The notes under the pieces were generated by a model. That model did no database searches, was not told the origin of the DNA, and saw nothing but the letters and a program-made list of their open reading frames with translations. 64,000 nt of DNA from Ramazzottius varieornatus (taxonomy: Eukaryota > Animalia > Tardigrada): the NCBI GenBank assembly GCA_001949185.1, contig BDGG01000003.1, forward strand, positions 2,897,158-2,961,157, given 5' to 3'. Below are positions 5,101 through 62,300 of the stretch, piece after piece (position 1 is the first letter of the stretch; the number at the start of each line of letters is the position of its first letter). The position numbers and the translations under genes were made by a program.

Positions 5101-5954
5101 CCGATCTCAATCAACGCAACAGAGCCATCTGATTTTTCCTGTTTCTGCTTGCTCTAATACGGTGATTTCATCCAGATCGTTATCTCAACTGGCGCACGTT
5201 TTCATTGTTGTTAGTAGAGAGCGTGCGCCACTTGGGAGAACGAGTTGTGTGAACACGTATTCAGACGGCCCAAGGATGGAGTTTGTCGTCAACTAACTTG
5301 TTGTTTGTTCTGTAGATCGCGCCACATTTCTGGGAGATATGGAAGGACTTCGAAGTGCGACACGGTAATGAGGATACCGTCAGGGAAATGCTTCGCATCA
5401 AACGATCCGTGCAAGCTACCTTCAACACGCAAGTCAACTTCATGGCAGCTCAGATGATGGCTGCTGTTGCGAAAAGCACTCAAGGTAAGAAACGTCAGGA
5501 AACTTCACCCGCGACGTCTTGAATGTAATTTTATGTTCGTCGTAGAAAATCAACCTGGAGACAGTATGAAACAGCTGGAGGCGCAGGCCGTGCCGGCTGG
5601 TACTGTTGCAGCGGCGTCCGCCGTCATATCGAAGCCACCACAGAAGGCCGTGTCGTTCGTCCGAAGTGACGAGGTTGTCCAGCCTAACAATCTGGTCACG
5701 GCATCCAACCCAGAAGAGATTCAGTTGGACGACGACGACGATGAAGATGGGGAAGAAGGGGATGAACAAGATCAAGCAGCGAAAAGTACGTTTATATCCC
5801 TATATGCTAAAGTCTTTTGTCCCTGAAATGATTGATGATTGGCCATGCAAATCTTTCCTGTGTTTCAGGAGTCTTCATCGAGAAGCAGAATGTACCCAGC
5901 AAAGTTTTTGGAACGCTGGCACCGAAAGACGCAAAGGATGACGAGGACGATTAG
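2167..5954 (+). CDS. XAB2: Pre-mRNA splicing factor SYF1/XAB2 (HAT repeats), multi-exon
   Basis: Conserved segments: [19 protein letters not shown]...[73 protein letters not shown]. Confidence 0.97.
4383..4503. repeat. Palindromic repeat family copy (XAB2 intron)
   Basis: GCTCGGCAAAC..GTGGCGCACG..TATTGGCTG..GTGCGCCACTTG..GTTTGTTTGCC. Confidence 0.85.
5165..5255. repeat. Palindromic repeat family copy (XAB2 intron)
   Basis: TGGCGCACG..CGTGCGCCACTTGGG. Confidence 0.8.
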
Positions 5955-13620: not shown

Positions 13621-14195
13621 TCCATTTTTGTCATGACTGGACGGAGTCCCTTCTTAGTCTGCAACTATTGTTTGGTGCATTTGGTTCTTCGCTTGTCTGG
13701 GTCAAGAACACGACCAAAAGCTTGAAGGGTTGTGAGAATGAATACGAGCAGTAAATCACCAATAAAATAGCGGCAATTGCCGCCGGAAAATTGTTCTCTC
13801 AAGTGGCGCACGTTCTCAGTAGTAACAGCCAGGATCGTGCGCCAATTGGTATAGCAATCTGATCGAGTTTTCCCAAGTGATGTACGTTTGAGGTGTTGTT
13901 AAATGAAGTCGCGCGCCACTTGGAAATACGATCTTGAGTTTACTCGCCTGAGGACACCCAATTATTCTTGTCGTTCAAGGTAATGCTGCAAGGGTTAGAG
14001 CCGAAATGTCTCGTGGATCGCATCGGCTTGATGCTCTGTGGGAAGCTGCAGAACGATGCAACGACGCTGCAGCAGGCATGTGTCGGTAACCGATCGGAGC
14101 TGAAGCTGATCCACTTGCTTGGTCCGTTGTACGGAGGGGGGCAGAAGGTTCGGGACCCCGCGCTGGCCGTTTATGACATTACGGACGTGACATGA
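13621..14195 (+). pseudogene. Ubiquitin-like remnant or divergent UBL gene interrupted by palindromic repeats
   Basis: 13621-13725 reads IFVMTGRS...LVHLVLRLSG. 13980-14195 reads LMLCGKLQNDATTLQQ...LIHLLGPLYGGG plus a tail. Both resemble parts of ubiquitin, but no clean spliced model was found. Confidence 0.35.
13780..13952. repeat. Palindromic repeat family, tandem pair
   Basis: Two CAAGTG..GCGCCA(C/A)TTGG cores in succession. Confidence 0.8.
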
Positions 14196-14398
14196 TGAAG
14201 ATGGTTCCCGCTTGAAAGCCTTGAATTGACTTGTATGGGCGCGATTGGTGGTTTCTGGACAACAGTTGTGGTCTCGCTGCTCTGTTGTCATCTAACTTAG
14301 CCGTTTCACAAAGCTGTTGCTATTCGTAGTGAATTTTATTTTTAGACGTGTTGTGTGGAAAACATAAGATAGATTTTTTGGCATTGCATCGTGTTGTG

Positions 14399-14495
14399 AG
14401 CTCGGCAAACAAACTCGGCAAGATTTTTTCCCCAAGTGGCGCATCCCTCCAGCCACTAAAATCGAGGATGTACACCGCTTCGAAAAGCGGGTTTC
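14399..14495. repeat. Palindromic repeat family copy (upstream of SLC34 CDS)
   Basis: AGCTCGGCAAACAAACTCGGCAAGAT..CCCAAGTGGCGCA with a degenerate right arm. Confidence 0.8.
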
Positions 14496-14946
14496 CCGAT
14501 GCTCTTTTTCATGCACAGAAACGGGCTATGTGAGCGGAAGGCAGGTTCTTCCATTAGGTGCGACCGAGCATTTTACGAGAACTGAGCTTGATAAGATATG
14601 GTATGTACGAAAGACGAACCTGCAGCAGTACGTGATATGCAGTGGGTAAAGACTTTTATCGTCGTACTGACAATTGCCATTCCCCGCAATCAAATACTTC
14701 TGATACAACAACAACAGCTTTGTGGATCACAGGTATGTGCCAAGCCCGGGTGTGTTGTCGTTCTTGTTTATGTCCAAGGAAAACATTCTGACAGGTGTTC
14801 GTGTATTCTGGCTAGTTCTCTAGACAGCACCCACTGATGGCGACCCCATTGAAAACGTCGTGATATCATCCCACTCTTCAGGCGCAATTTCTGCCAGGTC
14901 CCAAGAGATCATAATTTTATGTAATTCGCAGTCTTTCCAGGCCACG

Positions 14947-17474
14947 ATGGGAACTCAGCGAGAACAATCGGAAAGCTCGTCCGGTTCGAACGGCAGTGGC
15001 GGCAGCACGAACCGCTTCCGTATGAAGAGAATAACAGGCAAGTCTCCAGAATGAAGAACAGTGGATCAGCGCAAACATTAATTATTATGCTTCCAGAAGC
15101 GGGAGGGATAGACAATGCCAATTTCACCATGGGCACCGACGAGGTGGACGGTTGGAACCACGTCAGGCTGGACGACAAGCAGGATGCTTCAAAGACCACA
15201 GCCCCGAGCCCCTTAGTCATTTCTGTCGCGACTACAGAAAACTCTGCCTATGATCTGACGGTACCTGACGTCCCGGATGATGGTCCTGCTTGGAGCGGTA
15301 AGCAAGGTCCTAAATTTTGTCCAACTGTTTCGCATGTATCATAGTTTGTGTGTTTAATATCTGGTTGTAGAGCTGACTGTCGCAAGAAAGGTTCAGCGCG
15401 TAGTGATGGCATTCGTCAAGATAGTTCTGTTGTTGGCTCTGCTGTACTTTTTCATCTGCGCACTGGACGTTCTCAGTTCGGCGTTCCGCTTGGTGGCCGG
15501 CAGAGGCGCTGCAGGGATCTTTAGCGAGGGGAGCCTGTTGGCGAATCCGGTAGCCGGACTGATGGTAGGCGTCATGGTCACTGTTCTCCTGCAAAGCTCG
15601 TCTACGACCACATCTATTATCGTGGCAATGGTCAGCAGCAACGGTATGTGCCAGTGGGCGGAGCCTTTGTACCGGTAAATTTCCATATGACAGCTCGGCA
15701 AACAAGCTCGACAGGATCGTCTTTCCCAAGTGGCGCACGCTGCCAGCCGATATTACCGAAAATGTGCGCCACTTGGCAAAATGATTTTGTCGAACTTGTT
15801 TATTTGCCCAAGTGCGCACGGTCCCGGCGTTATTGGCTGAAGCGTGCGCCACTTTGGAAAACGATCCTGGCGAGTTTGGCGAGCTCACAAATGAGAAACA
15901 AGCCTAGTTTGCCCATCGTAGTTCTAGAGGTACATGTCGCTACGTTCATTATTATGGGCGCCAACATCGGAACGTCAGTGACGAGCACTATCGTTGCGAT
16001 GACCCAAGCGGGTGACAAAGAGATCTTCCGTCGGGCATTCGCCGGTGGCACGGTCCACGACATGTTTAACTGGCTGACAGTCCTCATCCTTCTTCCGCTG
16101 GAGTGGACGACTGGCTTCTTGTACCTCCTCACCGATGCCATCACGAAACCTCTAGAAGTTCCCGACGCTGAAAGTGCACCCGGTAAAGTAAAGGGTCTCC
16201 AGGAGATCACCCGCCCCTTCACCAACCTCATTGTTCAGGTACGAAGTTGAACGCATTTTATTCTGCTTTCTTCCTCCACATGATCTTAGAGGCTTATCAT
16301 GAGTTTAGATCAACGACTCGGTTCTTTCTGCATGGGCTAAGGACCCCAACGACACGTCCAAAATGATGTTCCGAACATGTGGCTCGCGGAATGAAACCCT
16401 GTCCGATGGTACCATCGTATCCGAGGATCTCTATTGTACGTATGTGTATGATAGTTCTCGTCTTCCTCCATATCGCTTACGCAGCATTGTTTTCCAGGTA
16501 AACACATGTTTGCAAGAGCCTCGACGTTGAGTGATGAAAATGTTGGGGTGATATTGTTGATCTGCTCGCTCGTGGTTATCTGCACTTCCCTCATCATTCT
16601 GGTCAAAGTTCTCAGCGGTATGCTAAAAGGTTCCGTCGCCAAAGTCATCCATCGTACCCTCAACTACGACTTCCCCTACCCATTTACCTTCCTGACCGGA
16701 TACCTGGCTCTTGCCATCGGTGCCGGCATGACCATCATTGTACAAAGCAGCTCTGTCTTTACGTCCACGCTAACGCCTCTAGTCGGTCTGGGCGTTATCT
16801 CCATTGAACGGATGTACCCGCTCACTTTAGGTTCGAACATCGGTACAACAGCGACCTCGGTCCTGGCGGCTCTAGCTTCTTCCGCGAGCACTTTCCACAA
16901 CGCGCTACAAACTTCGCTAATTCATCTCTTCTTCAACCTTAGCGGAGTCTTCCTGTGGTACACTTTATGGTTCATGCGGAGATTCCCTATCGGCGCGGCA
17001 AAGTTCCTCGGAAATACCACAGCCAAGTATCGTTGGTTCGCTCTAGCATATCTCCTCACCGTCTTTATAGTCATTCCTGGTATAGTTTTCCTGCTCAGCT
17101 GGCTCGGGCCGATCTACCTGGCTGTCGTGGGATCGATCGCCTTGTTCATAATAGCGTGTATAACGGTCATCAATGTGATGCAGAAGCACTGGCCACACCA
17201 CTTGCCGGTAACACTGCAAACGTGGAAATGGTTGCCGGAACCGCTGAGATCGCTTAGGCCGCTGGACAGACTGATTCGGAAAACCTTCAGGGTGGTGCCG
17301 TGCTGTCGCAAGATTGTGGCAGACGGAGCGGCGGAAAACCAGGCGGTCGTGGTTGCTGTACCACCTGTGCTCGACATGTACTCAACTCAACCCATGTTTT
17401 CCGTGAAATCCGATTCACCACTGGAAAGCAAACCAACTTCAGTCATGCTAATTCGATCTGGACGGTTAGATTAA
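14947..17474 (+). CDS. SLC34A: Sodium-dependent phosphate cotransporter, SLC34/NaPi-II family
   Basis: [82 protein letters not shown]. The first coding intron is GC-AG (15038-15096). Confidence 0.96.
15692..15885. repeat. Palindromic repeat family, tandem pair (SLC34 intron)
   Basis: AGCTCGGCAAACAAGCTCGACAGGATCG..CAAGTGGCGCACG..GTGCGCCACTTGG, followed by a second core. Confidence 0.88.
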
Positions 17475-17527
17475 TTGTACCACGTGTATCGTATTTCAAA
17501 TAAAATTCTTATGGTACATTCAGCGGA

Positions 17528-17640
17528 TGTGGACAAATGAACGGAACCAGATTGTCATCTCAAGTGGTGCATATTTTCATTGTTATTGGCTGGAAATGTT
17601 CGCCGGTTGAGAAATCGGTCTGCCTCAGTTCATCTCCCCA
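17528..17640. repeat. Palindromic repeat family copy (between SLC34 and LRRK 3' ends)
   Basis: CAAGTGGTGCA..TTATTGGCTG..CGCCGGTTGAG. Confidence 0.65.
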
Positions 17641-17798
17641 CGTGCAGAATTTTGTCCACAGATAAAATTCAATAAAACAAGAAGCAAATCCGACGGAATA
17701 AAAGCAATCTAAGTCGGAAAATGGTCTCTATCAGTACAGATCAAAAGAGAAAAGCCCGGAAAGAACTAAAACCAAAGAAAATACTGTCAGGAAAAATG

Positions 17799-20700
17799 TC
17801 AAAGTGCCCAGTCGTTGGTTCGCCACAACACAGCACACAAAGTCATGGGAGAAACACTCTGCTTGAGGTTATCATGGTTAAAAAATCTGCTTATCACATC
17901 GCGATAGCCTTGGCCCACCGTTATGACACGGCTGGAGCCATCAGCGAACCGCAGAGGGAGTATGGCCATGATGCGGTCAGCGTGGGGCCGGATCACCGAT
18001 AAAGGATTTAGGGAATGAGATTCCACCACTATCAAACTACCCCACACTGTTCCCACGTAGAGCAGCCCGTCGAACAGCGCCATGCAACTCAAATAGCGCT
18101 TTGTATCGTCCCGAGAGGTCTCGTCGATACCGATAGAGTCTAGACTTTCCGACACCGGGATCAATCTCTCACAGTCCAGCTTATGGACAACGTGCGACTT
18201 TAGCAGAGCCCAACAGTGCAACGTCCCATCTGAAACAAAGATCGAAGTTAGTGTTATTTTATAGAACTGAACCATATCGTTATTCCGAGTGGCGCACGTT
18301 TCCTTTTTAGTGGCTGGAAGTGTGCGCCACTTGGGAAGACAAACTGACTGATATCATCTGCACACAAGGCCGTGCTCGTAAAAGGCCGTGCTGGACATTC
18401 TCGAGTGTGGTGAGTTACCTTCTTCTAAGCAAGTCCATGCAAAGCTTCCTTCCTTCGGACTTCCCACAATCTTCGCAGTTCTCTTCGACGTCTCGGGGTG
18501 TTGCAGAACAAAGTCTTGAGCAATACCGTCATCTCTAACATGAATGGCGACAACCTGTCCACCATCTGCAGCTGCCCATATCGTCTCTTTGCTGACGAAC
18601 GTCAGTTCGCTCACCGCAATATCTATACGGCAGAAGTTCTCGACTAACTTGTTCTTGCGTAAAGATGCGTGGCTGTTCAATACGAGCAGTCTGTTGGAAG
18701 ACAGCGCTACCACCACTCGTTGTTTGTCAGGGTTGTAGACCCAACAAAGTACGTCACCATCTTGGGCAGCGTTACCGAAGGTGATGGCGAAAGACTCGAG
18801 GAGCTCTAAGGTCTTTGAGCAGTAAACAGAGACCGTTCTACCACGAAGAAGCCAGATGGAATCCGGCATGGAAAGAGCGCGCGAGACGGAGGTTTCTTCC
18901 TGCGCCGCATTCATCGTCTGCAAAGAAAATAGTATTCAAAAAGCAGGCTTTCGAAATGTTAATATGTCCAAATCAGCGTTTGAGCAAAACCAATTTGTGA
19001 TAAGGAAATCCCTTATCAATTTTTTGGAGTATGATAGATTTGCTGAACGAAACGTGTTACCCGAGAGTCAGTCCAGCTGCTCGACGTGCATAACACCATA
19101 TTGATCGTTCCATCCTGCAGAACAATACCAACAGCGTCGCCCGCGACGAAGATGCCACCGGGTACCACATTCAGTCCAACGTCTTCCAACATGGCGACAT
19201 CTTGCAAGTGGCTCAGTTCCGGTGTATTGCAGATAGAAAGAACTTGGCTCGAACTTGGTCGATCCTTCGGCGACTGCGACCAGGCGATCACTAATAGATC
19301 GAGGATCAGGGAAGGATACGTCAAGGTCCAACTCGTGACAGGAGGTCGACCACCATCCAGAACGATGTCTTTGACCTGATCCTGTCCGTCGAATGGCTGC
19401 TTTAGTGTCAGAAGCTCGTACATCAACATTCCGAAGGAGAAGACGTCCACCTGAAAATGAAACCAGTGCTCAATGTGACACTGCCTCCAACAGACTTCGA
19501 AAAAGTAATTTCGGAATAAAACTCGCATGAACCTGCCTACAGTCTCCAGTAAGAATTAAGTTTCCGCGTGTATGCAGGTCCCTGACTTTACACCCGAATT
19601 TTGAAGGATAAAAACTTCGATCCTTCCTAATATTCGACAGTTCTTCTACACGTACCGCTTCGTTATACTCTTCCTCCCCTCCGTATTGAATGATTTCCGG
19701 AGCAATGTACGCTTCGGTCCCAGCGAAGCCTTTGGTGGTACTGGCCGCTGTAACCGCTCTGGATATCCCATAGTCCGTCAGCTTGACCATCACCTTTTTG
19801 TCCATACTCCACACCAAAACATTGTCCGACTTTAGATCCCGGTAGATGATCCGGAAGCCATGTAAGTACTCCAACGCTTTACTAATCTGACTGCAAATCT
19901 GCTGCACACACACCGCCGATAGCCTGTCGCTACTTTGCCGTAGGTTCTTCAGATGGTCCAACAGAGAACCCTTTGGCGCGAGCTGAAGGACTATGCCCAG
20001 TGGCTGCATACATAGTCCCACTAGGCCGACGATGTGGTGATGAGACAAGGATGTCAGTATGGACAGTTCTTGACGAGCCGTCCAGTAAGCTTTACAGTAC
20101 GACTGTAGAGGATCGTGCTCCCACTGCTGCATGGCACTCTTATATGCAGCGAGGACAGCGGGATCCGAACCGAAACCTGGATCGACCGGAAGTAGCATCT
20201 TGACCGCCACCTCTTGTGCCGTCCGATTGGCCTACAGAAGACGTTCATGCGATATTTCGACCTATTTTTGTCTTATTTGTTCGTTGTTTCTTCTTCTTAC
20301 GATGGCTTTGACGGAAGCTCTGTATACAAAGCCAAAGGCGCCCCGCCCTAGTATTCTTCCCCGTTTGAGGTCGCCGGGGAAGAGTAGCTTCTCGATGGGC
20401 AAGTCCAGGAACATAGTTTCAGGCGCGATATCTCGCAGCTTGACCGTGCCGTGAGTAGCACATGTCATGTCGTCGTAACCTGTTACTGCTCGGTAAATCA
20501 TCTGTTCCACCGAGAAGACTCGGACATCAGTTTCTGTTGTGTCCGAAGCACCTTCGCCCATTCCGTTTAACATCCAAGTCGTAAGACAGGAAGGACACGG
20601 CGTGAACTTTGTGATGAGCAGCTGTCCGGTGGATGTGTGGATGAACCGTGTCCCCAAACTTGGATACCTGGAAAAAAAAGAAACAATTACAAACGCCGGA

Positions 20701-23700
20701 CAAAATTATTGGAAAGGTCGGCAAACGAAATGCGGAAGATCATTACTTCAAGTGGCGCGCCTTCTCGTTGATTTGCTAAAAGGGTGCGCCGCTCAGGATA
20801 ACAATCCTGTTTGTTTCGTTTACCGACCTCGTCAATATTTTCTCGTTGGATGAAATTTCTCACCAGTCCTCTAACAGTGCATCGATATGGCTGACACATC
20901 GGTTCAGCAACATGGAGACGCCCGCCACGCTACTGACCACGATCTCGCCTTTGCTATACAGCGGGAGCTTGATCTCCATAATGGCTTTGTTATTCAAGCT
21001 GAGTGTTTTCCAGTTCCCATCGTGGTTTATCAGCACTTTCTCCGGTAAACGGTTATTATACTCCGGTAGTTCCTTCAGTTTCAGTACAGGGTTGTTTCCG
21101 AACCGGAGTTCCAGCGCATTCTGCCAGCACAGCCACTCTACGGCCAGACCCGACTTGCCTTCTTCGGAGTAGTAACCACGAAGGTCCTTCCAAAACTTCT
21201 CGTCGGAAATCAGACGAGAAATCAAGCGGGACCAAAACCCACTTGGAAAATACAGCATGGTGTAATACCTACAGAAAAACACTCCTTACATCTCCATTGG
21301 ACAGTAACCAGTCCATCAATCTTGAACCCATGCATACCTACCGACGAATTTGCGAACTGGCATCGGTTGCCAGTCCTTCCATCGATACACTGGGTTCTTC
21401 CGGGCTATCCAGATATGGCTTGAAATGTATCCAGTTCCTTCCGCTACTTCGAATCTCAATCTTCAACGGAAGGTTATCATGCGCCGTACCATCCATGTTT
21501 GTTCGCTTGATTGGTAACATCGACGGTATCAGCAAAGTCCTCGCGTCCAGTTTTAGCGCCACCTCGAACTTGTTCAACAAGCTGAGAATGTACGTGTGTA
21601 TATCAATCAGCGCATACTTCGACAGCTTGAACAGCACCTTCAGATCATCCACTTTCATGATCCCCCTCCTGACGAACGGATTGATCTCCCTCACGGTAAT
21701 CACGCTAGCCAGGGTATCGCACAGCCACTGCGGGTCAAGGAAGTACAAGTCCTTCAACCCACCACTATCCTCGTAGTGTAACAGTATGCCGTTATCATGC
21801 AAAAACATGACGGCTTGCCGGAGCTCTGCAGAGTCTCGGAATGTCATGTCGAAGCGCTCATGTAGTTCGTGAGCTATGATCGCGCGGAAGTACTCTGTGG
21901 TGACTACGGGGTGTTGTCCGCTGTCACGGTATTCTTGGGCCAGGGTATTGACAAGGTCTTCCAAAGCGATGTAGATTTTGGGGACCTGTTGTTCCATTAG
22001 GCGTTTCTGCGTGCCCGGAGACCGCATGTCCCAGGCTGCGTCCGCAATCATCTTGGTTAACTGAGGCACGTTCGTCTTGTTTTTGCAACTAACTTCCACA
22101 CAGCCTACAATGCGAGGAAGTCCGTGCTTGTCGGCGTCAATGACCCCCACAAAGCGGTGGCGCACCTGTAAACGATCTCTAACTTAGTAAGCTCGGCATA
22201 GTTTGAGAAGGCGACACAGACCTGCATACACAGGCACCGAACTAGCCGTATGCAAGTGCATGACGCGGCCACATTCGTACAAACTACTGTAATTATGGAC
22301 CCTTTTGAGCAAGCTCGTCTAGTGAAACAGTTTTCCTAGTGCTTCTTACGTACTTCTCGCTTCAGTTCTTCCGCGTAGTCCAAACTTCCTTTCATGCCTT
22401 TCACCTCATCGAGATGCGTCCCCACTATAACTACCGGCGACCCAGGTGCTCTGGCTTGGATGTTCACCAGCCACTGCGTGATCTCCCTGATACCGACAAG
22501 CCCATCAAGCATGTTCCACACCACCAGGTATATCGAGCGCTTAGACAGGAAGTACTGGTGCGTAGCGTAGTACTCGCGCTGACCAGCAAAGTCCCACGTA
22601 CGAAAAGTGAAGTCATGTGCCCCGTTGCTGTATGACCACTCACCTAGGTCGATGCCTACTGTAGACAGCTCGACGGAGTGCCGAGAGTTCTTCTGCGTCA
22701 TGCGTTGTGTCCAGTTGGACGATTCGGCTGATGATGGGCGCTTCCTTGTGGGTTCCTCGTTCTTTAGAGCTTTGAGTAGGCTGGTCTTTCCTTTATTCTC
22801 CAGCCCGACGAACATGAGCTTCAGCCGGCTATATGGCTGACAGTTTTCCAAGGACGACTTCAGATAGCCTTGAAATAGAAATACATATATTGTGTTTGAT
22901 TTTCCTGCTCGTAGATCCAGTCCCAGAAAATTGATCATACCAAGAGGAGAAGACTAGAAATACCTAGAATGTCGGCGGTCTTGTATTGTTTGTTGTTGAA
23001 CATGCTCTTCAGCGGCTCTGTCAGGTTACATCCATGAGCATTCAGAGTCCACAGCTTCGGCAACAGCCCGAGCTGTGGGGGAATGTCTGAAATACCCACG
23101 TTGCCAACGAGGTTCAGAATCGACAGGGCTGACATGTTAGAGTACGACACGGGCACTTCGGATAGACGGTTGTTGCTCACGTCGAGGACGGACAGGTTAG
23201 GGTAAAGAAGTGACTGTCCTCCATTCCCCGATGCATTCTGAAACCCATATCGCAACTATTATCAAATAATTGGTCATCTATAGTTTAGAAACAGAACAGC
23301 AGCATTAGAGCGCACTCACCAAACGCCCACCCGAGCCCGAGGAAGTGCGACTTCCTTTCTTCGTCGGCGGACTTCCGGTCACTTCGAACGATGCCAGAAG
23401 GTTCTGCGAAACGATTAGAGTTCTCAGGTTATCGAGCCGCCAGTGTCGTCGATGTATACATGGGTGATCCGTTTCAATCGCCACTACAAATAAGACAGTG
23501 CGTTAATTAGTGCGCCACTTCATCAGATCGAAAAACTCTTACTACTTCGCCTTCCTTTATACCAGGAGCCCTCATCTGAATAGCACACACAGTCCACTTC
23601 TTCCGCCATGGCGGGCCTCAACGCCTCCTCCAGCGAGTTCCCCGCGAACTCCAGATGCTTGATCCCAGCTGGTATGTCTTGAATGATGCCCATGGATCTG

Positions 23701-33238: not shown

Positions 33239-34900
33239 ATGGGACACCTCTCGACAGACCTACCCTACTTCCTGCTTGCGGGACTTCTGCCGTTCTGCTG
33301 GGCAATAAGCACACAAGAATGCTCGCTCGTCATCAACGAAATCCAATTAGAGTCTCTTAACGTCAAAGTCGAGTTCATAGAGCTGCGAAAGAACTGCTCC
33401 GGACCTTTAGACCTCTTGCCATACACCATGCTGCTGTGGCATGGGGCAGCGGGCCAGAAGGGCGTCACCAAGCTGGACCACAAAGCCGCTTTCAGTAAGG
33501 TTGACGCCTCGAACGCCACCTGTAGAACCATGAACGATACCTTGCTGGTTCTTGGTGGTCATGGCGTCATGCCTCTTCTCGACAACACCACGCAGTTTTG
33601 TCACTTTGACTCGTTCGGTAATGAATGGAAGGCGGAAGTAAATAAGCCGACGTTGGACAAGACGGCGAAGACTACGAACGCTTTGACGCTGTACAAGAAC
33701 TTAGACTCCGCAGTGGTTGAGAAGCTGACTTTGAATACGAGCCTGACTGACGAAACTGCGAACCGGAATAATATCGTAGATATCGTTTTCTTCTCGGGAA
33801 GCAAGGGTGGAGGTGGTGAAACCATCAAGAGTCTGCTGTTCCCCGAGTATCAAGTAAGACCACTACTCCATCATATTGGACGTCGGCAAATGACTTGAAC
33901 ATGATCGTTTTCCCCAGTGGCGCTGAAAACGTGCGCTACTTGAGATCATATTGATATTCAATTCACTTACCGATGTCCACATGGTACAGTACTATTATTT
34001 AGTATGCATATGTTGGAACTCGGCAAACGAACTCGACATCACTGCCTTCTTGAGTGGCGCACGTTTCTTGTATTATTGGCTGAGAGCGTGCGTCACCTGG
34101 AAAAAAATGATCTGATCGAGACTGTTCGCTGTGGTCCCTTGTTCTGGTTTTGGTTTCACTTGTGTTTTTAATATTAGGTGGGACCAACCGAGAAGAATAT
34201 CTACTACCGTATTGCCGATAATGACAAGGGGAACGTCACAGCAGAAAACCGGCGATCCTTCTCGTACTGCTGCAACCAGAGCTCGGTTGGTGGGAAATGG
34301 CCTATGGCCTTCAAGTATACAAAACCATCACCCGCTGCAGAGAATAACTGCTCGGACCCGGCCGAGTATGCTTTCGATGCACACGGTACTACCTTCGGCC
34401 TGAATACTGACAGGTGTGATGTTCAAGCTATAGAAAACTACTTCACGAAACCTCCTCCAATAAGCACGCCTCTCACAACTACCGTTCCCTCGACTACCGG
34501 CAAAGTAGTGCCAGCGGCTGACACTGAACGCCGGGTTCGAGATATAGGACTTGGCGTCGGCATTTCGTTGGCTCTGATCATCTTTGGCCTTGTTGCTTAT
34601 GTCATAATCTTGCGCCAGAGACTAAAGTAAGCCTCTTAACCTTAAAGTGGGGGATCCGCAAACAGATTCGACAAGATCGTTTCTTCAAATGGCGCATGCG
34701 TCGAGCTAATAACAGGCAAAGCGTGCGCCACTTGGGAGAGCAATCGAAATACAAATTTCCTGGAAGATGTTCCCAGTTTTAAAACCGGTGTTTTTCTCAG
34801 GTACAACGGTGTTCCAGAGTCGGGAATGGACCGCGCATGTATGAGGATGTCCTGTCTACAGTCGGGTGAAGAAGAGGGCAGGCTGGTGATAGATGCCTAG
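33239..34900 (+). CDS. Type I membrane protein with an extracellular lamin-tail-domain (LTD)-like module
   Basis: Signal peptide, LVINEI..EFIELR..LDLLPYTMLLWHG, PSPAAENNC, Thr/Pro stalk, TM GLGVGISLALIIFGLVAYVIIL and a short tail. Three exons in frame. Confidence 0.75.
33878..33975. repeat. Palindromic repeat family copy, short spacer (intron)
   Basis: GGACGTCGGCAAATGA..CAGTGGCGC..CGTGCGCTACTTG. Confidence 0.75.
34016..34130. repeat. Palindromic repeat family copy (intron)
   Basis: CTCGGCAAACGAACTCGAC..AGTGGCGCACG..TTATTGGCTG..CGTGCGTCAC. Confidence 0.85.
34652..34750. repeat. Palindromic repeat family copy (intron)
   Basis: TCGACAAGATCG..TGGCGCATG..CGTGCGCCACTTGGG. Confidence 0.8.
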
Positions 34901-35929: not shown

Positions 35930-37787
35930 ATGTGCTCAATAAGGTTATTTTATTTTTATTGTTTCTTTTGTCTTATATGTTCCATCGGAGGCCAAGAGGT
36001 CGTCACTCAGACTTCTTCCGACTACGAGGAACTCCGAGACGCCTTTCTTCAGGCTAACCTTCCACAGCTTACCGATGAACTTCCCTCGACTACCCTGATC
36101 TCCAGTAATTTTCCGATCTCAACGCAGCCATGGTACAACGAACCTCCCAAGTCCCAATCGAACACCGATGCTACTTCGGGAGATCACAATAGCCATTCGA
36201 CCACCGAGTACCCTCCGTACTGGCATAACATAAATCATAATGCACATCACGGTACTACTCACGACCCCAATGAGATCGAGCAACCGGAGGATACCCGGTC
36301 GACCACGGAATCTCCATATTGGCTCGTTACGGAAAAGGAACCGGAAATGCATACAAACACGGACACTCCCGAACGTTCCACGGACGGAGTACCACCGACG
36401 TGGTTCAACGATCAGTCACTGTGGAATACTGGGTATGTTACCACGGAACATACCACTACTCCGACACCAACTATTCCGGATGAAATAGAGAATGACGATG
36501 AGGATTCGGGAGATCCGGCGGACGATGAGAACAAAGACGGGGAACCTATTGGCCTAGCTGAACCCACAGCGCCAGCAAAATCGATGTTCGAGACGGTAGA
36601 GCATGTCATCGAAATTAGTACAAGTGCGCCACTGCGACCTCACACAACTGGACTATTGGCGACCGTTTACGCGGAAGTACAATTTGACTCGGCAAACCCT
36701 ACGACGGAAAGACCTGTCGGAACCACTCCTGAGATTAGTGGGGTCAACGAAAATGATCTTTGGGATGCCTTACGTACTACTACTCAGCGGGTTACCGATT
36801 TAGGTGAATCCATGTCGGATAACGATGAAGAGGACAAAGTCGGAAACGTAACAACAACGAAGGCTTCGGTGATGAACGTATCTTCGGATTTTTCAATAAC
36901 GGATGATGCGGGTGTATGGAGTGGGAACTACTCTACGCTGTTCAACGATACCTTTTTGCCGGGCAATACCTCTTCGAATTCGTCGGATGGGAATGAGACG
37001 CTGAATGACTTCACGTGGAACGGATATAACGGAAATTACTTTCCGGATCTTTTGAATGCTACAGAGCGGGTCATTGATCTGGGCGAATCAATGTCAGATG
37101 ATGACGAAGAGAAGCTCGAGGATACGTCCGGAAACTCGACGAACGTGTCGACCTCTACAACGCGCACGTATTCAAGGCGGATCCAGCCAACGGTGCTACC
37201 GATACACCCAACTACCCGTTTGACCGGAGATTTTGTACTAGAGTCCTCGATCGTCGTTTCAAGTAGGCAAGATATGGTTAATATGCAAAATATCAAAAGG
37301 GACGTGGGCAAATGAATTGAGCCAGATCATCTCTCCAAGTGGCGCACGCTTTTAGCCAATGTGACAAAAACGTGCGCCACTCAAGATGCGATGTGGTTCA
37401 ATTCATTGGCCAACGTCCCAAAAGATAAACACATCGGCTTGAGACCTGAGTATAAAATTTGCAGATTTTTCTGCTGTTTTTTCAGGAGAGCACCCGGATA
37501 AAGCCTCACACACCGTGCTACTATTTGAAAACGCCGTACACATCTACGGACTCATAGCGTTCGGACTTGCGGTATTGGCGACAGTCATTTGTTGTTGCGC
37601 CTATGGATGCTGTTGTAAAAAGTACGTGCTAAGCTTCTCTTCCCGATTAATAACCGAAATATTCTGACACTTCGATCGGCAGGGTGCCCTATCAGACACG
37701 AACTTATATTACAGAACCAACCGCAGGAGGCAGTATGTGGTGAACGGAGAACCGAAAAGCGTCAGCGATCCCCTGCTCGGTATCTGA
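35930..37787 (+). CDS. Acidic mucin-like type I membrane protein (stop at 37743 or 37787 depending on the last donor)
   Basis: Signal peptide, a ~440 aa Thr/Ser/Asp/Glu-rich ectodomain with many N-x-S/T sites, TM IYGLIAFGLAVLATVI, then CCCAYGCCC. Confidence 0.8.
37299..37419. repeat. Palindromic repeat family copy (intron)
   Basis: GGGACGT..AATGAATTGA..CAAGTGGCGCACG..AGCCAAT..CGTGCGCCACT..TCAATTCATT..ACGTCCC. Confidence 0.88.
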
Positions 37788-38725: not shown

Positions 38726-41310
38726 ATGTTGCCCAAGTTATTTTCTCTGATCGTTTCGATCCTCCTCCTATCGACACAAATACGATGCCAAGAAGAGGCC
38801 CCGCTCGATCCCGATGGGACAGGTCCCGTCGATGTCCCTAACACCAAAACGCCGGAAGTGGATGCGGTAGAACCGGAAGTCACTCCTGGACCAGCAGCTG
38901 ACGTCGTGGAAGCAGGTGCAGCAACTGCTCCCCTGGTCGAAGATCAGTCTACCGTAGATCCTTTACCGACCCTTCAACCTGTTGCGCCTGAATCTGCAGC
39001 TATTCCTACATACGCTGTTGTCGAAGAGGCAACGGTAACCACGCCAGCACCCGCGGAAGTCGTGGAGGAAGCCTCTACTGTCGCAGATGTCACTGAAGAA
39101 ACTGTGACGGGGGAAACTACTACCGTCGACACCACTGCTGCCACAGTTTTGGCCACCGCGACTCTAGTGCCGGATACGACGACTGGAATCGTCATCATAG
39201 CCGCACCTGTTGCTGCCGTCTCACCCGATGCTTTTCCTGAAGGTACCAGTCGATCGAAATATAAAGTAGTCTCATCTTTTGTCAAATCCAACAAGTTGTG
39301 AGATTGCAAAACTCGCGAGATCATTTTCTCCGAATACGATACATCATTCGGTAGCTCGGTAAACAAGCCCGACAAGCCTATTTTCTTCAAGTGGCGCACG
39401 CCTCTATTGTTGTTGGCTGAAAGCGTGCGTCAGTTGAGAACGTGTTCTTATCGAGATTGTTTGCGGAGCTCCCATTTTCCAAGCTTTAGTTCGCTTTTAT
39501 CTATCGAGAAGTTAGCTCTCTGAGAGTTTCGGTAATCATCCCAGAGATTCCTTACAGATGCCACGGACAGTTCGTCAAGTACAACGACAGGAACAAGTAC
39601 GACAGTCGCAGGTTTCGTTCCGATAATTGGAGTTGCTCCAGTTCTCGGCAAGACCGACTTGGCTGAAGAACCTGAAACACCTGTTGATGTCGAAGAGGCC
39701 GTGGTGGATGACACCACTACACCTGTACCGATACTTATATCGGCAGTTCCTGTAGCTGAGACGACCACAAAGAGCTCAAGCCCGATCCTATTTGGGTCAG
39801 CTGGAAGTGGGCCGGAGACAGGTGCTGCGGGTGAAGCGGAGCCCAAGTGGGCTCCCGGACCAACGTGGTCCTCCACGCCGTTGCCAGTCATCCCCATCAC
39901 CGATCGTAGACTTGGTTTCGGTAACTAAACTGAACCTGTTGTACTGTGTTCATCTTCCGCGCTGACAGTGGTTTTGTATTTTATAGCTTCACGATGGGAA
40001 GGCTTCAAGAGCTGGATCAATCAGTGGGGACTGTTGCTGTTCGGTCTATTGTTGCTGCTGTTGATCATCTTAGTTATGATTTATGCATGTTGTTGTATGA
40101 AGTAAGTGAAGAGAGATTTTTACCATTTTTCGAATGTTTCCGATGAATATTCGGGTGATAACTGGTATTGTTTGCTTGTTACAGAAAGGCGGCTGCGCCG
40201 GTCGAAAAAGAGCGAATCGACATTGAGCGTACTGAACGCCTCCGGCCAGTCGATCTACTGCGACAGAGCGATAAGTCATACCAAGAAGACTTATCTTCAG
40301 GAACTGTCGTCCAGTCTTATCGCGAGACCACCACCACCATAAGGGAAACTGGCCAGGGCGCTCCTTTGGGTGCCGGTACTCCCCATAACAGCTTCGCTCA
40401 AGTACCGAGTACCCATTCTGGTGGCATCGAGAACCAGAACTTCCGGGCTACACCAAACAGCGGAACCGGTAAGTAAAGTCCATCCATCCTGCGTCAGTGA
40501 AACAATTTTTCTGTAGATATTCAGGGGACTTAAAAACTAAACCTTTTGCTTCAACGAATCCACTTGATCCCGCAATGGGAGGTCGCAGGTACAATGGCGA
40601 TAACCTGTACATACCTGCATACAGTAAACCGAAGTGTTGTGTACGACCTACTGTATGCAGGCTGTTGAAAGGATGTCCGTTTTATCGCCCTCTTTCGCAC
40701 TTCGATATAACGTTTCAGTTGCTGATCGAGAAAGATGATCTTTTCCCCTTACACTTGACGAAAGCTGGTTGGTTTCGTTGGGGATTATGGAGAGTTTTCA
40801 ACAGGTTACAAGTTCATAAATCCTCGCCATTTGGACAGTGGCGTCATCGCCCACAGCCCCACTCCACCACCCAGCTACGGTGATCGTCGCTTGGACGTTC
40901 CTCCCAATCGTCTCTCCTCGCGTGACGTCATTTTCGCTTCTCGAGCTCCCACCGCCGTCAGTGCCGAAGCTCCCTCCGTCCCACTTCACTCGGGAACTCT
41001 CGAGCGAGACGCCAGTTTGGATCGTGACCGGCCAGTACTCCGAGGTGGAAACCCTGACCGATCCAGCTCTCCGCGACCTTACAGCGTCCACCGTACCACC
41101 TTGCTGATAACTCCCAGTGTCAACCGTGATCCCGATCAGCCATTCAACCCCGCTGAACAGAACTCCGGTCTAACGTACAGCGACTATGTAGGCATGATCC
41201 GTGGAGAGCCCAGTGACTTTGGCCAGTACTCGCCCGATCGACGACCACTGCCCGCCTACAGCAGCAGCGGACGTCTGTTGCGTGAAAACAACACCGAATC
41301 GCAAGTTTAG
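38726..41310 (+). CDS. Mucin-like type I membrane protein with a C-terminal PDZ-binding-like motif
   Basis: Signal peptide MLPKLFSLIVSILLLSTQIRC, Thr/Pro/Ala/Glu-rich ectodomain, TM GLLLFGLLLLLLIILVMIYACCC and a disordered tail ending ESQV*. Confidence 0.8.
39353..39460. repeat. Palindromic repeat family copy (intron)
   Basis: AGCTCGGTAAACAAGCCCGACAAG..CAAGTGGCGCACG..TTGGCTG..CGTGCG. Confidence 0.8.
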
Positions 41311-42258: not shown

Positions 42259-43654
42259 ATGGGGTATGATCTGGAGCGTTTCGAAGATCCCGCGAGCGTC
42301 GACAAGGAGCTGTTATGCACCATCTGCGGAGGTGTCTTCATCAACCCTGTTGAGGTGAGTATTGTTTTGCTTGATTGCATCTAGCTTTTGCTGACGTTGC
42401 GCTCAATTAACTTCTGGTATTGGTGGTGACTTTGACAGTTTTGGTTTGTTGTTTGCAGCTTCCCAAATGCGAGCATGTCTTCTGCAAGTATGTATTTTTT
42501 ATCTTGTCGTTTTCCAAGTCCGAGATTTCAGGCAACAAGGCATTGGTTTCCCTTCTGCAAGGGCCTGCTTGGACCGCTGGATGCAGGAACAACCGCGATG
42601 TCCCATCGATCGAGAGATGATTAGTTCCAAGGCACCTCCCGCGCCTGCTCCACGCATCTACCGGACGATATTACAGCGATTAAGGATTCATTGCCAGTTT
42701 TACGAGCATGGATGTGCAGCCATTATCTCCCTGGACCAGGTGGAATCGCATGAAGCCACTTGTGAACACAACCCTGAAGGCCTCGTAAGCGTCTTCTTCC
42801 CTTTCCTAAATTTCCTGTTTTGTACTGATCACATTTCTTCCTTTTGCAACTTATTTAGATTGAAACAGCCGTAAGTGCTAGGAATTTTGCTGTATATATC
42901 GTTTCGTTCAGGTTATGTGCGATAAGGGTTGCGGGACCGACTATAAGAAATCCGCTAAATGGGAGCACAACTGCGTGGCCATACTTCGACAAAAACTCGA
43001 CGAGTCCTTCACGCTGATTCACAACATGACGACGGAAATCTCGGACCTGAAACGGAAAGTGAAAGAGTTGGAAGAAGGCAAAGGATATCGTCGAGCTCAA
43101 CCAACTGTTCGTCCCGAGCACATCGCGGAGTGGGCTGACCAACTCACTTTGGCCCAAGTCACTTACTGGGTAAACATCTCCATCTCTAGCAAAGAAACGT
43201 GTCTTCATGTTGGTTATTCTGTGTAGGGTGGATTGATCAGTACGCCTGACAGTTATCTTCAGACGCAAGTGAAGGAAGCTCTAGAGCAGAGTTGTCTGAA
43301 CACAAATTGTCCAGCAGAGCTGATTGACCTTCTCATGCAGAATTCTCACGAACGAGCTTGGCCTCCTGGCTTGCGAACGCTGGAACGAAGGCTCTTCAAC
43401 CGCACAATCTACGAAGGTTATGCCTGTCGCAGAGTTCCTGGAAGCCAAGCTGTCGTCATTCTCTCCCAAGACAATCGTCACGTAAGTCCACAGTCATTTC
43501 GGTATCTTCCATTAGACTGGTTATTAGGTTACGAGCTCGTACTGATGGGTGTGTGTGTTTGCAGATGAGCGACGACATGATCCTGCATCCGGGCTTGATA
43601 GTTATCTTCGCACACGGCGTGGAGGATTCGAATTTCTCCGATATCCGCGACTGA
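42259..43654 (+). CDS. RNF41: E3 ubiquitin ligase NRDP1/RNF41
   Basis: MGYDLERF..CTICGGVF..CEHVFCKACLDRW..CPIDR RING, a SIAH/TRAF-type zinc finger, WGGLISTPD, NSHERAWPPGLRTLE, PGLIVIFAHGVE. Confidence 0.95.
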
Positions 43655-44002
43655 AACTGTACGTGTCTTGTCTTTCCAGAAAACAATTATTTTTTTTAAT
43701 TTTTCGTCCTCTGTAATTTCGTGCGGAATATCGGTTACGCATGTGTGCTTTCGGTCTCTGCGCAAAACAATCAACAAGGTTAGGCGTTTTTCTAGTATCG
43801 TAGTCCACATGATACTCTTGCAGAGCGTCTTGAATGCATATTATTTATATTTTTCTGTTTTCAAAATTGTAGTACTGTAGTTTTGTGATGTGCAACGATA
43901 ATGCCGTCTATGATATTTTATTAGCTGCCTTTTTTGGTAGCATCGGAAACGAAGTCGACAACGGGATGTAAAAATGGAAACATGAAAGGTGTTCAAAAGT
44001 TT

Positions 44003-46975
44003 TCATAATTTGAGGCGCTTTATCTCGTCGGACCGAAAGTCTGTCCTTAAAGCTAAAATCAATCTGGCTTCGCTCGGGGTGATCCGCCACGAAAGACTAA
44101 TACCCGAAGCAGGATTCCACAAGTCCAGAAACTCGTTTAAACTATCAACATTGAGTATCGTCACAATCTGAATAATTCTAGCGAACTTGTCTCGGATAGA
44201 CCAACCGGTGATGGAGCTGAGATAATGCAGCAGTCTCGACCGGATTTCCTTGTCAACCTGAAGACCTCCCAACTACAATAAAACCCTTCGTTAACCATCG
44301 GAAAGTCTCACAGAAAGGTTTGACGAAATATAATATCTTCTTACTCGGCTGTACTTTTGCTTCACAACGCACTTCTCCAGTTGTTCGGCGACTTCTGTGG
44401 CCACATACTTGACCAAGTGTTCGAAGTTGTTCTTGGTTAAAGAGGTCTCGAACAGTCCCAGTAGAGTCTGGATATTGAATACAAAGTTCTCCACGAATGG
44501 ATCGGTAGTTTCGTAGACGGCGTACTCTTCCTCAGTGATATCGTGGTTGACGCTGTTGAACGCATCAACCAGTGGCTTGATCCGTGGCTTCAGGATGGCC
44601 GCGTGCAGTTGAGAAATGCCAGAGTCGACCACGACACGGAAAGCGTGCGCTGCTTGGGACAATTCCGCCAAGGTACTCTAAAACCATAGCGCAACCTTCA
44701 CATGAAGACTTCTTCACAGAAGAAAGAGAACTAACGAAGTTTTTACCCTACCCTGATTTTCTCCTTTTCCAAATCCAAGATTTCCGGCAACGTGGCATCG
44801 GTTTCCCTCTAAAAAGACAGAAATGTTTATCACCACTACGAATGTTCCCGTCAAATTGAGTTATTCGGATATCGAAACTACGGCCCAAGTACCTCTAAAT
44901 TTTCTGCCAGAGTGCGCAGATAGTCCACACTGACATCTGCATCGTTGAGGTTCGCTAGGAACGCTTTACGGTTCTTATCATACAAGTCCATGTCGACCGG
45001 CGCGCTGGTGCCGATCATCGAGTAGTACGCTTGGGACAGGTCGATCGTGTACACGACATACGAATTGCCTTTTAGCTTCTCATGGAGGACTGTTGCGAAG
45101 TCTTCCTGAAGAACACTGATGGCATGGTTCAGTATCGCACAGATACCATCTACGCTAGTACTGGAAAGCGCCCGACGAACGCTCTTCCGCACAACGAAAA
45201 AGACGTCGTCCACCATGCTGGACGTCATTGAGTTCTCCTCGATCTGCTCCATACTGATGGCTTTCTTTACGGACTGCCTCATGTAATACTCTTCGATGGT
45301 GATGTAATCGCCGATGAGTTCTTGCATGGTTCTGTTCAGCTGGGATGCTTCGAGGAACCGACTTATCTGTTTCCGCCTATCTGTGAAAAAAACCGTTCTG
45401 TACAACTTTGAAAATCCATAGGTGCAGTAGAAGCATGAGTACCTTCTTTTTCCTTGTGAGTTTTATCGATAGCGGAAAAGTCCGCCGTCAGTTTCTTCCG
45501 AAGGAACCGCAAATAAAGATCGACTCGCGTACTGATGACCGTCACTTCGATGAGCAATGCTTCCAGCTCCAATGGATCAATCCTGAAATATAAGGTAGCT
45601 TAAGTAACATCTTGCGCAGGTGAAAAGACGGAACTCGGATAATATACACGGAATGAAGACTTGTGCTGGTGGACTTGGTCGATCGTCGAGCGAAGTTGCG
45701 TATCTGCTTTGCGCGTTCGGAAAACTGTCGAAACCTGACGAACTCTTCCACCATCTTGACACCCTGACGGTCGCATTCGCTCTGGATGTACTCAACAAAG
45801 TGGAAAAGGTATCCGGAACCATAGTAGGTTTCAACAAGTGGCTCATATGTTTCAACGGCATGCGCCACTGTTTCGACGAACTTGGTTATCAGCTCGACGA
45901 AGAAGGAAGTGGAAAGGTCCTTGCGATTCGCTTCTTTTATAGAACTCCTCGCTGTTTCCAGAAGGCTCTGCGCCTTGTCGGAGATCTGTATATCAAGAAC
46001 AATAAAGAACCAAATCTTCAGAGGAAGACGGCTGGCATGCTGGAATCATATAACGACACCAGAACGAAACGGGCACAGCGGATGAATCGGCCACCCCTTA
46101 CTGTAACGATCTCGCACGCGTGACCGACTCGCCGTTCGTGCCTCGTAACTCCGATACTTACGTTAGAGCACAAATACGTGCAGAACTTCTTCAGTCCAAC
46201 GGCATGCAGATTTAGAAGTGGGAATATCTTGAATAGCCGTTCGACGTTAGCCACATCGGCGGTGTTGAGTGCTTCTTCGAAGCGGACATTGATAATGGTT
46301 TCGAGCTTATGTTGAGCTTCTTGGAGCAGCGATAGCGATTCCTTCAAGCTGCTTCGCTGCTGCATGTCGTCCGCGCTGTTCAGCAGCCCACTCTTGTCCA
46401 TCTTCAAGAAGCGATTGACGTGCATAGCTGCCACTTCGTATTCTTCGTTCTCCATGGCGAGACGAACACCTTCGGTGCAAAAGCTGAGGTCGAGGACGTC
46501 TTCTATGCGCTGGAGGCATTCTTCCACTATGTGCTTTGCAGAGTCCAGGTGCCGGATCTTGCCACTGACGCTGTCGGCGAGCTCCGCGGAGAAGCCTAAC
46601 GTACGCTTCAAGTGTGCAGCTTCATCTTCCAACAGTACGACGGCATCTCTAGGAAAATGCGGCGTATGACAAGGGTAGACAATGCAACTGGAAGCGAGTT
46701 TCAGTCGTGTTACGTTCGTACGTACCAACCTGATTTCCAGCAAGGTTTTCTCGTTCTTTTGCGTTTCCACGTTCCCCGCTAGCAGCTCTCCGATCTCCCG
46801 ATTAAGCTCGTCCTGGAATAGATGCCTTATTACCGAAAGAGGTGCCGTAAAAAATTACGGCGTAACCAGGAACGATCCACGCGCAAATTTCTCGTATTGT
46901 AGTATATTGGTATACCTCTTCAGCGCACAGCTTGTGGAAGGCTTGCTCCGCTTCTTGGCGATGCATGTACGCCAT
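44003..46975 (-). CDS. COG4: Conserved oligomeric Golgi complex subunit 4
   Basis: [87 protein letters not shown]. Includes a 57-nt exon at 44752-44808. Confidence 0.96.
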
Positions 46976-47120
46976 CCTTCAGTCACTCCTCGTCGACCCT
47001 CGATGCATCAACGCTCTGGTTCACAGATTCCTCTCGGGCCTTGGCAGATGGGACTCATAGGAGAAAACCCAGCTTCGAAGTTCGGACTTCGGAGGATTTT
47101 CACGGAAATAAAACGTAAAT

Positions 47121-47334
47121 GAGCAGTGGGCAGAGTAGATCAGTAAGGCGGGGTTAGCTTTTTGTAAGTATGGAGGGCGAACCAAATGAAAATTGTCTCT
47201 AATTAACCAATCAAGATTGTCAAATTTAGAGCTTCTGTGCCTTGATTGGTCGTCTACGGATATTCTTGATATCATGCCCTGCTCCATATAATGTCATCTC
47301 ACCACGCCTTACTGATCTACTCTGCCCACTGCTC
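47121..47334. mobile_element. 214-bp non-autonomous DNA transposon (Sola-like signature)
   Basis: Perfect 30-bp TIRs GAGCAGTGGGCAGAGTAGATCAGTAAGGCG (47121-47150 / 47305-47334), flanked by a 4-bp direct repeat AAAT (47117-47120, 47335-47338). Confidence 0.8.
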
Positions 47335-47594
47335 AAATAAAAGGTGTATACATGGTTTTACGTTACAGTCTGTCTGGCCTGTGTGGCTGCTGACTCAACT
47401 GGGCGGTGACGTTCGCTGGCAGAGTTGCAGTCTGGCAGACTGTGAGGCTCTCAACTTTCACAAGTCCCACCGGCAGACAGGCTTCCATAAGTTGCATTTC
47501 CGGCTCCCGTTTCTCCCGCGAGAACCTCCGTTTCCTCCTTGATTATCCTTGTTTTCTAGGTGTTCCTTATTCCCTAGAGGACTTCTAGGAGAAC

Positions 47595-48056
47595 ATGGCC
47601 AACATCAAGGAGCGCACCTTCATCGCGATCAAGCCTGACGGTGTTCAGCGTGGTCTGGTGGGAGACATCATCAAGCGTTTCGAGCAACGTGGTTACAAGC
47701 TGGTGGCCATGAAGATGGTCCATGCCGACACCAAAATGTTGGAGGAACACTACAAGGATCTGGCCGGTAAGCCTTTCTATGCTGGCCTGGTCAAGTACAT
47801 GAACTCTGGACCGATTGTGGCCATGGTCTGGGAAGGTCTGCAAGCTGTCTCCACAGGACGTAAGCTGTTGGGTGCCACTAACCCCCTCGACAGTGCTCCT
47901 GGCACCATCCGAGGCGACTTCTGCATTCAGACTGGCCGTAACATCTGCCACGGAAGTGATGCTGTTGACAGCGCTGAGCGGGAGATTGCCTTGTGGTTTA
48001 AGAAGGAAGAACTCGTCCAGTGGGACCACCACAGTGCCCCATGGATTTACGAATAA
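47595..48056 (+). CDS. NME1: Nucleoside diphosphate kinase (group I NME/awd), intronless CDS
   Basis: [45 protein letters not shown] with the catalytic His. Confidence 0.98.
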
Positions 48057-61945: not shown

Positions 61946-62186
61946 ACAACACAGAAAATCTGTCACATTACCGAAAGATAAGCTTGGTGCTCGATATCGT
62001 TTGAATCTGCTGTATCTTGACATCCCGAGCAGTAATACGTTTTGATGTTCTCCACCATACCTACTGTGACATCCACACAAGCTCCATGAAACCATCCATC
62101 GCAACTCTCACATCCGCTGCGAAACATAAACACTTGCTGTTATAAGCGGAAACGTCGGTAAAAAGATGCACGATGTTCAAAAACTA

Positions 62187-62300
62187 GGAACTCGTCGAAC
62201 TGACTCGAAAAAATCGTTTCCAAGTGACGCACGTGACCAGCCAATAATGCCAAGAACGTGCGCCACTTGGGAAAACAATCTGGTCGAATGTTTTGTCGAT
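62187..62300. repeat. Palindromic repeat family copy
   Basis: CCAAGTGACGCACG..AGCCAATAAT..CGTGCGCCACTTGGGAAAAC. Confidence 0.85.

Follow-up and report, generated by a model that had tools for sequence, protein, structure and literature searches.

Intron 2 of the RNF41/NRDP1 gene of the tardigrade Ramazzottius varieornatus was analysed within a 64,000-nucleotide stretch of contig BDGG01000003.1 (assembly GCA_001949185.1, positions 2,897,158 to 2,961,157 of the forward strand), referred to throughout as the window. The intron is best read, with a probability of about 0.74, as a lineage-specific new spliceosomal intron that arose from the repair of a double-strand break in RNF41, an exon of COG4 having supplied the filler. 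An original prediction, made from the letters of the window, had proposed that such a break was patched with sequence from the adjacent convergent gene. The core of this proposal was supported by a filler with a unique second copy, by a duplication at the intron borders and by open reading frames (ORFs) from other organisms that lack an intron at this site, whereas two of its additions, i.e. a perfect target duplication and a hint of an mRNA template, did not hold up equally well.

Structure of RNF41 intron 2 and its match to a COG4 exon

Protein searches for RNF41 and COG4 were performed with one exon at a time. The six coding exons of RNF41 (Table 1) aligned, exon by exon, to NRDP1 of Hypsibius exemplaris (P0002) with 57-85% identity, and the C-terminal exon matched the Pfam family USP8_interact (E 4e-30). 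Intron 2 interrupts the codon AA|G within CEHVFCK|AC (i.e. in phase 2). Without the intron, the reading frame and the motif CEHVFCKAC are re-established; about 100 homologues have this half of the RING finger (C-x-H-x2-C-x2-C). The predicted length of 74 nt, the GT..AG borders and the splitting of the RING domain at FCK|AC were all reproduced, and the intron would be removed by joining position 42487 to 42562. Its acceptor is AAG, weaker than the CAG or TAG of the other four RNF41 introns, as expected of a young intron. A candidate alternative acceptor, GATTTCAG (42524-42531, with CAG at 42529-42531), lies inside intron 2, and its use would lengthen the RING finger by 10 residues (30 bases, in frame); the 44-nt intron that it would define is probably too short for use.

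No match was obtained in a word search with a 142-aa ORF spanning intron 2 or in an exact look-up of an ATG-started ORF, and a metagenome scan returned unrelated RING-H2 proteins only. A second, distant RNF41-like zinc-finger locus (L012; G000:C2:8855279-8855458) shows 37% identity to exon 3 and contains an in-frame TGA. It may represent an intron-containing paralogue or else a broken copy.

The borders of intron 2 carry the perfect 10-bp direct repeat that had been described for them, with the right copy providing the AG. When GT..AG pairs situated 45-200 nt apart were collected from both strands of the window, a junction repeat of at least 10 was found for 1 of 76,778 pairs, namely intron 2, giving p of about 1e-5 for a 10-bp junction repeat; junction repeats in the other four RNF41 introns were of 1 nt or less. 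The right repeat copy directly adjoins exon 3, indicating that the exon flanks were once contiguous and hence that all 74 nt would have been inserted with no need for an older intron. This copy also shares 2 nt (CT) with the end of the putative COG4-derived segment. The period between the repeat copies is 73 as compared to an intron length of 74 nt, with three G residues at 42561-42563, so that a clean event of duplicating 10 and inserting 63 falls one base short of the spliced-out length. The 'perfect target duplication' of the original prediction is, in consequence, one base off. The split codon specifies Lys in R. varieornatus but Ser in P0001, P0002 and P0151 (P0001 and P0151 being ORFs described below), a difference that fits an imprecise gain, off by one base.

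The body of the intron matches a whole COG4 exon, without gaps and on the same strand, at 45/57 positions with an offset of 2,255; the match ends on the first base of this minus-strand exon, next to its acceptor. Using intron 2 as a query against the window, blastn-short recovered the COG4 exon at 44/53 (E 2.7e-11), the runners-up being four matches with E 0.24. A repeat search reported the same relationship as 53 nt at 83%, the sole sizeable repeat in a 7-kb region. In a self-comparison of the window, nearly all other matches belonged to a family of palindromic repeats, and outside this family no pair but intron 2/COG4 (E 3e-8) was short, local and two-copy. If the E value of 2.7e-11 is scaled up to a comparison of every intron with the complete genome, the expectation is still about 0.004, and it is far lower if the comparison is limited to neighbours within a few kb. 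A chance match between intron 2 and COG4 is excluded. Twelve mismatches separate the two sequences, of which seven are at third, three at second and two at first COG4 codon positions, and the codon changes comprise four synonymous and six non-synonymous differences. Both the extent of the match from the first base of the exon and the count of 7/12 third-position mismatches agreed with what had been predicted. A 16/18 inverted match between intron 2 and RNF41 exon 4 (43035-43052), with EISDL in both, was rejected as a chance similarity (E 0.24, three equal matches), and CAAG and TTCTGC, considered as possible microhomologies to the adjacent COG4 exons, were dropped as extra indels were needed.

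The copy number of the insert was assessed in 55,842,812 bases of genome sequence on 200 contigs. Degenerate patterns with three mismatches allowed located both halves of the shared core only in RNF41 intron 2 and the COG4 exon, and the 5' part of intron 2 was unique in the genome. BLAST-type DNA searches of the genome returned the query itself only, although these were too insensitive to detect even the known intron 2/COG4 pair. The shared sequence could have proved to be a multi-copy repeat; instead it has two copies genome-wide and lies outside the repeat family of the window.

Intron position in other lineages

The presence of introns in other organisms was read from ORFs called directly on genomic contigs in protein collections. 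The ORF P0001 (171 aa; Logan; 3.9-kb contig) starts with a non-homologous stretch ending ...SSVVLQ, i.e. the tail of intron 1, continues with LPECEHVFCSACIERW... unbroken across the intron-2 site and loses homology after ...NPEGLIMCGK. P0151, which is 87% identical to P0001, starts ...FPSFQ|LPDCEHVFCSACIERW and extends through the equivalents of exons 3-5. Both contain LP(E/D)CEHVFCSACIERW without a break at the site and are 61-62% identical in exon 3. Like the window, these two ORFs, which are most likely from other tardigrades, have intron 1, but intron 2 is absent from both. The segment LPKCEHVFCK, fused to exon 3 in P0001 and P0151, is a separate micro-exon in R. varieornatus because of intron 2.

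Fifteen further 50%-cluster representatives likewise have the tail of intron 1 and then an uninterrupted C.H..C..C, a count that excludes six vertebrate-type representatives (P0007, P0012, P0013, P0014, P0017 and P0018). As the site is uninterrupted in P0001, P0151 and these 15 representatives, the position of intron 2 is not ancestral across metazoans, while intron 1 is old and widely shared. Over RNF41 exons 3-5, R. varieornatus, H. exemplaris and P0151 are approximately equidistant (72%, 69% and 69% identity), whereas the COG4 copy in intron 2 has diverged by 17-21%. Set against protein identities of 69-72%, this divergence indicates that the insert is much younger than those lineage splits and suggests that it was gained in the Ramazzottius lineage.

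Differences among tardigrade lineages were also apparent for RNF41 intron 3 (42785-42911), which is located in the window at NPEGL|VMC in phase 0. P0001 reads NPEGLIMCGK before its homology ends and P0151 is unbroken there, indicating a position that is about 10 nt apart or absent among these lineages. RNF41 introns 3 and 4 may likewise be lineage-specific.

Proposed origin and alternative explanations

Gain by break repair would begin with a double-strand break in the RING-coding sequence at ...CTTCTGCAAG/GCC.... Repair by end joining would have left 8-10 bp of the target in duplicate, with a filler of approximately 63-64 nt between the target copies; at least 53 and probably 57 nt of this filler would have been copied from the COG4 exon 2.2 kb downstream. 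The filler is in direct chromosomal orientation and hence antisense to RNF41. The GTATGT donor would be supplied by the left end of the insert, and the AG acceptor with its pyrimidine run by the antisense of the purine-rich COG4 exon start plus duplicated RNF41 sequence. With donor and acceptor assembled in this way, the whole insert would be spliced out and the RING finger restored. Both the break and the repair pathway are inferred.

A copy from spliced COG4 mRNA or cDNA, as opposed to the chromosome, is considered unlikely. This template had been suggested in the original prediction by the 7 nt past the exon, which match the next COG4 exon at 5/7 and the COG4 intron at 1/7. With the COG4 exons compared separately, as unjoined sequences, these counts were reproduced, and 5/7 or better is reached by only 1.3% of 7-mers in the window; against this background, the support from seven bases selected post hoc is nevertheless weak, and further on the similarity is at background (9/20, with 11 of those 20 being RNF41's own exon). 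The exact halt of the homology at the first base of the COG4 exon would also fit a spliced template, and RNA-derived patches at breaks, some containing several spliced exons, have been documented in human cells (PMC5110952). An exon-exon junction is, however, no natural patch end either. As the flanks in the COG4 intron are neutral in both copies and decay faster, a genomic copy would look exon-limited on the left, and the right side is uninformative because the duplication begins at once. The target CTGCAAG/G is not T-rich, the COG4-sense tail is A-rich without being a homopolymer and a 10-bp duplication is present. About as doubtful is the proposal that a functional intron together with a 29-nt micro-exon was created by break repair in the germline, with spliced COG4 mRNA as the template either directly or after reverse transcription. 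R. varieornatus is noted for its survival of massive DNA breakage.

An older intron at this site, the body of which was later replaced or filled by COG4-derived sequence, is improbable. Old introns are able to take up insertions, and the JGI ORF P0006 gives a hint of an intron in another animal lineage, placed one or two codons further downstream. The duplicated exon end at 42552-42561, however, runs straight into exon 3 and leaves no remnant of an older intron, and P0001, P0151 and approximately 15 other lineages are uninterrupted at this site, in contrast to the widely shared site of intron 1.

The direction of copying was considered in relation to the structure of COG4. Successive minus-strand exons of this gene match Pfam COG4_N, COG4_m and COG4_C, and the neighbours of the proposed donor exon match COG4_m and COG4_C. 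In the human COG4 structure 3HR0, the alignment of the COG4 exon at 44677-44294 begins at chain residue 67. Neither a 20-aa exon reference nor the tail of the exon upstream gave a useful match in PDB and Pfam, and the 19-residue exon was not placed on human COG4 by these searches. Neither a second COG4 locus nor a retrocopy was found in the genome, in which COG4 is single-copy. The COG4 exon could conversely be a recent exonisation of RNF41-intron sequence, and its 57 nt, being divisible by three, would permit addition or skipping without a frameshift. This reversal is very improbable: the target duplication borders the RNF41 copy and not the COG4 copy; the exon lies amid COG4_m and COG4_C exons with the next exon at 3HR0 residue 67, so that residues are expected there; and the differences lean toward third COG4 codon positions. 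With a duplication around the RNF41 copy only and an in-frame COG4 exon amid conserved exons, copying from COG4 to RNF41 is the economical direction and is the one inferred.

The stop codons of the convergent RNF41 and COG4 genes are approximately 350 nt apart (43654-44003), so that their 3' untranslated regions may overlap. For the COG4 exon at 44294-44677, an 84% identical ENA ORF (P0153) has the upstream intron position in common (..SSQ|STLAELSQ) and departs from homology after ..LLGLFE within the equivalent of this exon, which suggests an extra intron there in the organism of P0153.

A family of palindromic (hairpin-like) repeats, with at least 14 copies of approximately 100-180 nt at 66-82% identity, is present in the window and looks like miniature inverted-repeat transposable elements (MITEs). 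Despite this family, it is scarcely credible that intron 2 came from a transposon, MITE or introner with target-site duplication, or from coincidence or an assembly artefact: the insert has two genome copies, one of them a coding exon, and is not part of the palindromic family; direct reading and a repeat search found terminal inverted repeats to be absent at the ends of intron 2; chance is excluded by the E value of the COG4 match and the single junction repeat among the GT..AG pairs; and copies diverged by 17-21% are impossible as a chimeric-read artefact. A separate 38-nt inverted repeat (47120-47157 and 47298-47335; 95% complementary, arms 140 nt apart) is located upstream of a nucleoside-diphosphate-kinase-like ORF (47595-48056).

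Two further routes were rejected. For a tandem-duplication intron, only the 10 bp at 42552-42561 repeat RNF41, the remainder matching COG4 or nothing. Templated insertion by polymerase theta produces short inserts that are copied from sequence directly next to the break and show microhomology at the junctions, whereas here 57 nt match a site 2,255 bp away and the right junction has a mere 2-nt (CT) overlap.

Several points weigh against gain by break repair with COG4 filler. To reconcile the period of 73 with the length of 74, one additional base or an altered codon has to be assumed; when the intron is removed, the frame and the RING motif return, but with this one-base imprecision and Lys in place of Ser, and the 42487/42562 junction itself is predicted from the sequence. 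The absence of the intron was read from the ORFs of P0001, P0151 and the 15 representatives, whereas P0152 (98%) and P0153 (84%), both matches in COG4, belong to closer, Ramazzottius-like relatives. The third-position excess (7/12) is weak by itself (binomial p about 0.07). Lastly, an ancestral state of the COG4 exon is argued from its position amid conserved exons and from the duplication on the RNF41 side.

Table 1. Positions of RNF41, COG4 and repeat features in the window
Feature	Position	Strand	Remarks
RNF41/NRDP1 gene	42259..43654	+	six coding exons
RNF41 coding exons	42259-42354, 42459-42487, 42562-42784, 42912-43169, 43227-43481, 43565-43654	+	
RNF41 exon 2	42459..42487	+	29-nt micro-exon, LPKCEHVFCK, final codon split
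RNF41 intron 2	42488..42561	+	74 nt, GTATGT...CAAG (GT..AG)
Left direct-repeat copy CTTCTGCAAG	42479..42488	+	final 9 nt of exon 2 and G of GT donor
Right direct-repeat copy CTTCTGCAAG	42552..42561	+	carries AG acceptor
Proposed COG4-exon copy in intron 2	42497..42553	+	antisense to RNF41; strong core 42501-42553
COG4 gene	44003..46770 (approximate coding span)	-	convergent with RNF41
Proposed donor COG4 exon	44752..44808	-	57 nt, 19 residues; AG 44810-44809, GT 44751-44750
Palindromic repeats (first seven)	4418-4513, 5172-5252, 10585-10718, 13787-13871, 14395-14499, 15687-15879, 17525-17645		
Palindromic repeats (other seven)	18264-18365, 20703-20841, 34015-34144, 34641-34745, 37291-37419, 39347-39479, 62181-62297		

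Comparison with known intron gains and repair patches

The origin of new spliceosomal introns is a long-standing question, and most recent gains are without a traceable source sequence. RNF41 intron 2 would be a rare gained intron for which the source DNA can be named, with the duplicated target, a cis donor 2.2 kb away, a 2-nt junction overlap and composite splice sites all visible at one locus. It also shows that an insertion is able to carve a 29-nt micro-exon from a RING finger. The RNF41 locus offers a concrete place in which the question of DNA or RNA templating can be addressed in related tardigrades and suggests a simple genome-wide screen, i.e. a search of introns against nearby exons combined with a search for junction repeats. 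As read here, the case adds a clear-cut example to a mechanism that is known but seldom documented, and its proposed donor is both unusual and informative.

The closest parallels are the neo-introns of Daphnia pulex, which have been attributed to the repair of staggered double-strand breaks (Li et al. 2009; PMC4202315). The new Daphnia introns are marked by direct repeats of 4-12 bp at the exon ends, and the source of their inserts is mostly unknown, the few identified being mitochondrial or rRNA sequences (PMC4202315). RNF41 intron 2 similarly combines an exon-end repeat (10 bp) with an insert foreign to the host gene, but differs in its proposed donor, a protein-coding exon of the nuclear genome that lies on the same chromosome at a distance of 2.2 kb. 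Only five 'unambiguous' intron gains by double-strand-break repair, from Drosophila, Daphnia, Aspergillus, Bigelowiella and human, have been compiled (Yenerall & Zhou 2012; PMC3443670). In these cases too, DNA taken up as filler at a break became spliceable; the filler is, however, mostly organelle DNA, whereas RNF41 combines a long junction repeat with a proposed donor in cis. Flanking repeats are not in excess among the gained introns of Drosophila.

Templated sequence insertions (TSI, or TSIP class 2; PMC5110952) resemble the RNF41 insert in having a patch from a transcribed region elsewhere, microhomology (here 2 nt, CT) and an extra base. The class 2 patches comprise tens to hundreds of bases with end-joining marks, and many are derived from RNA; target duplication is absent from this class, while class 1 is characterized by poly(A) and a TTTT/A target (PMC5110952). 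The RNF41 insert departs from class 2 in its 10-bp duplication, and an RNA origin is unlikely for it. In AGGT tandem-duplication introns (reviewed in PMC3443670), duplicated host sequence provides a splice site, as is proposed for RNF41, but only 10 bp of the RNF41 intron is derived from the host and its body would come from another gene. Introns made by transposons (i.e. introners and MITEs) likewise involve a target duplication that donates a splice site and an insert that is spliced out; the RNF41 insert differs from these in being two-copy, in the absence of terminal repeats and in having a coding exon as its proposed donor.
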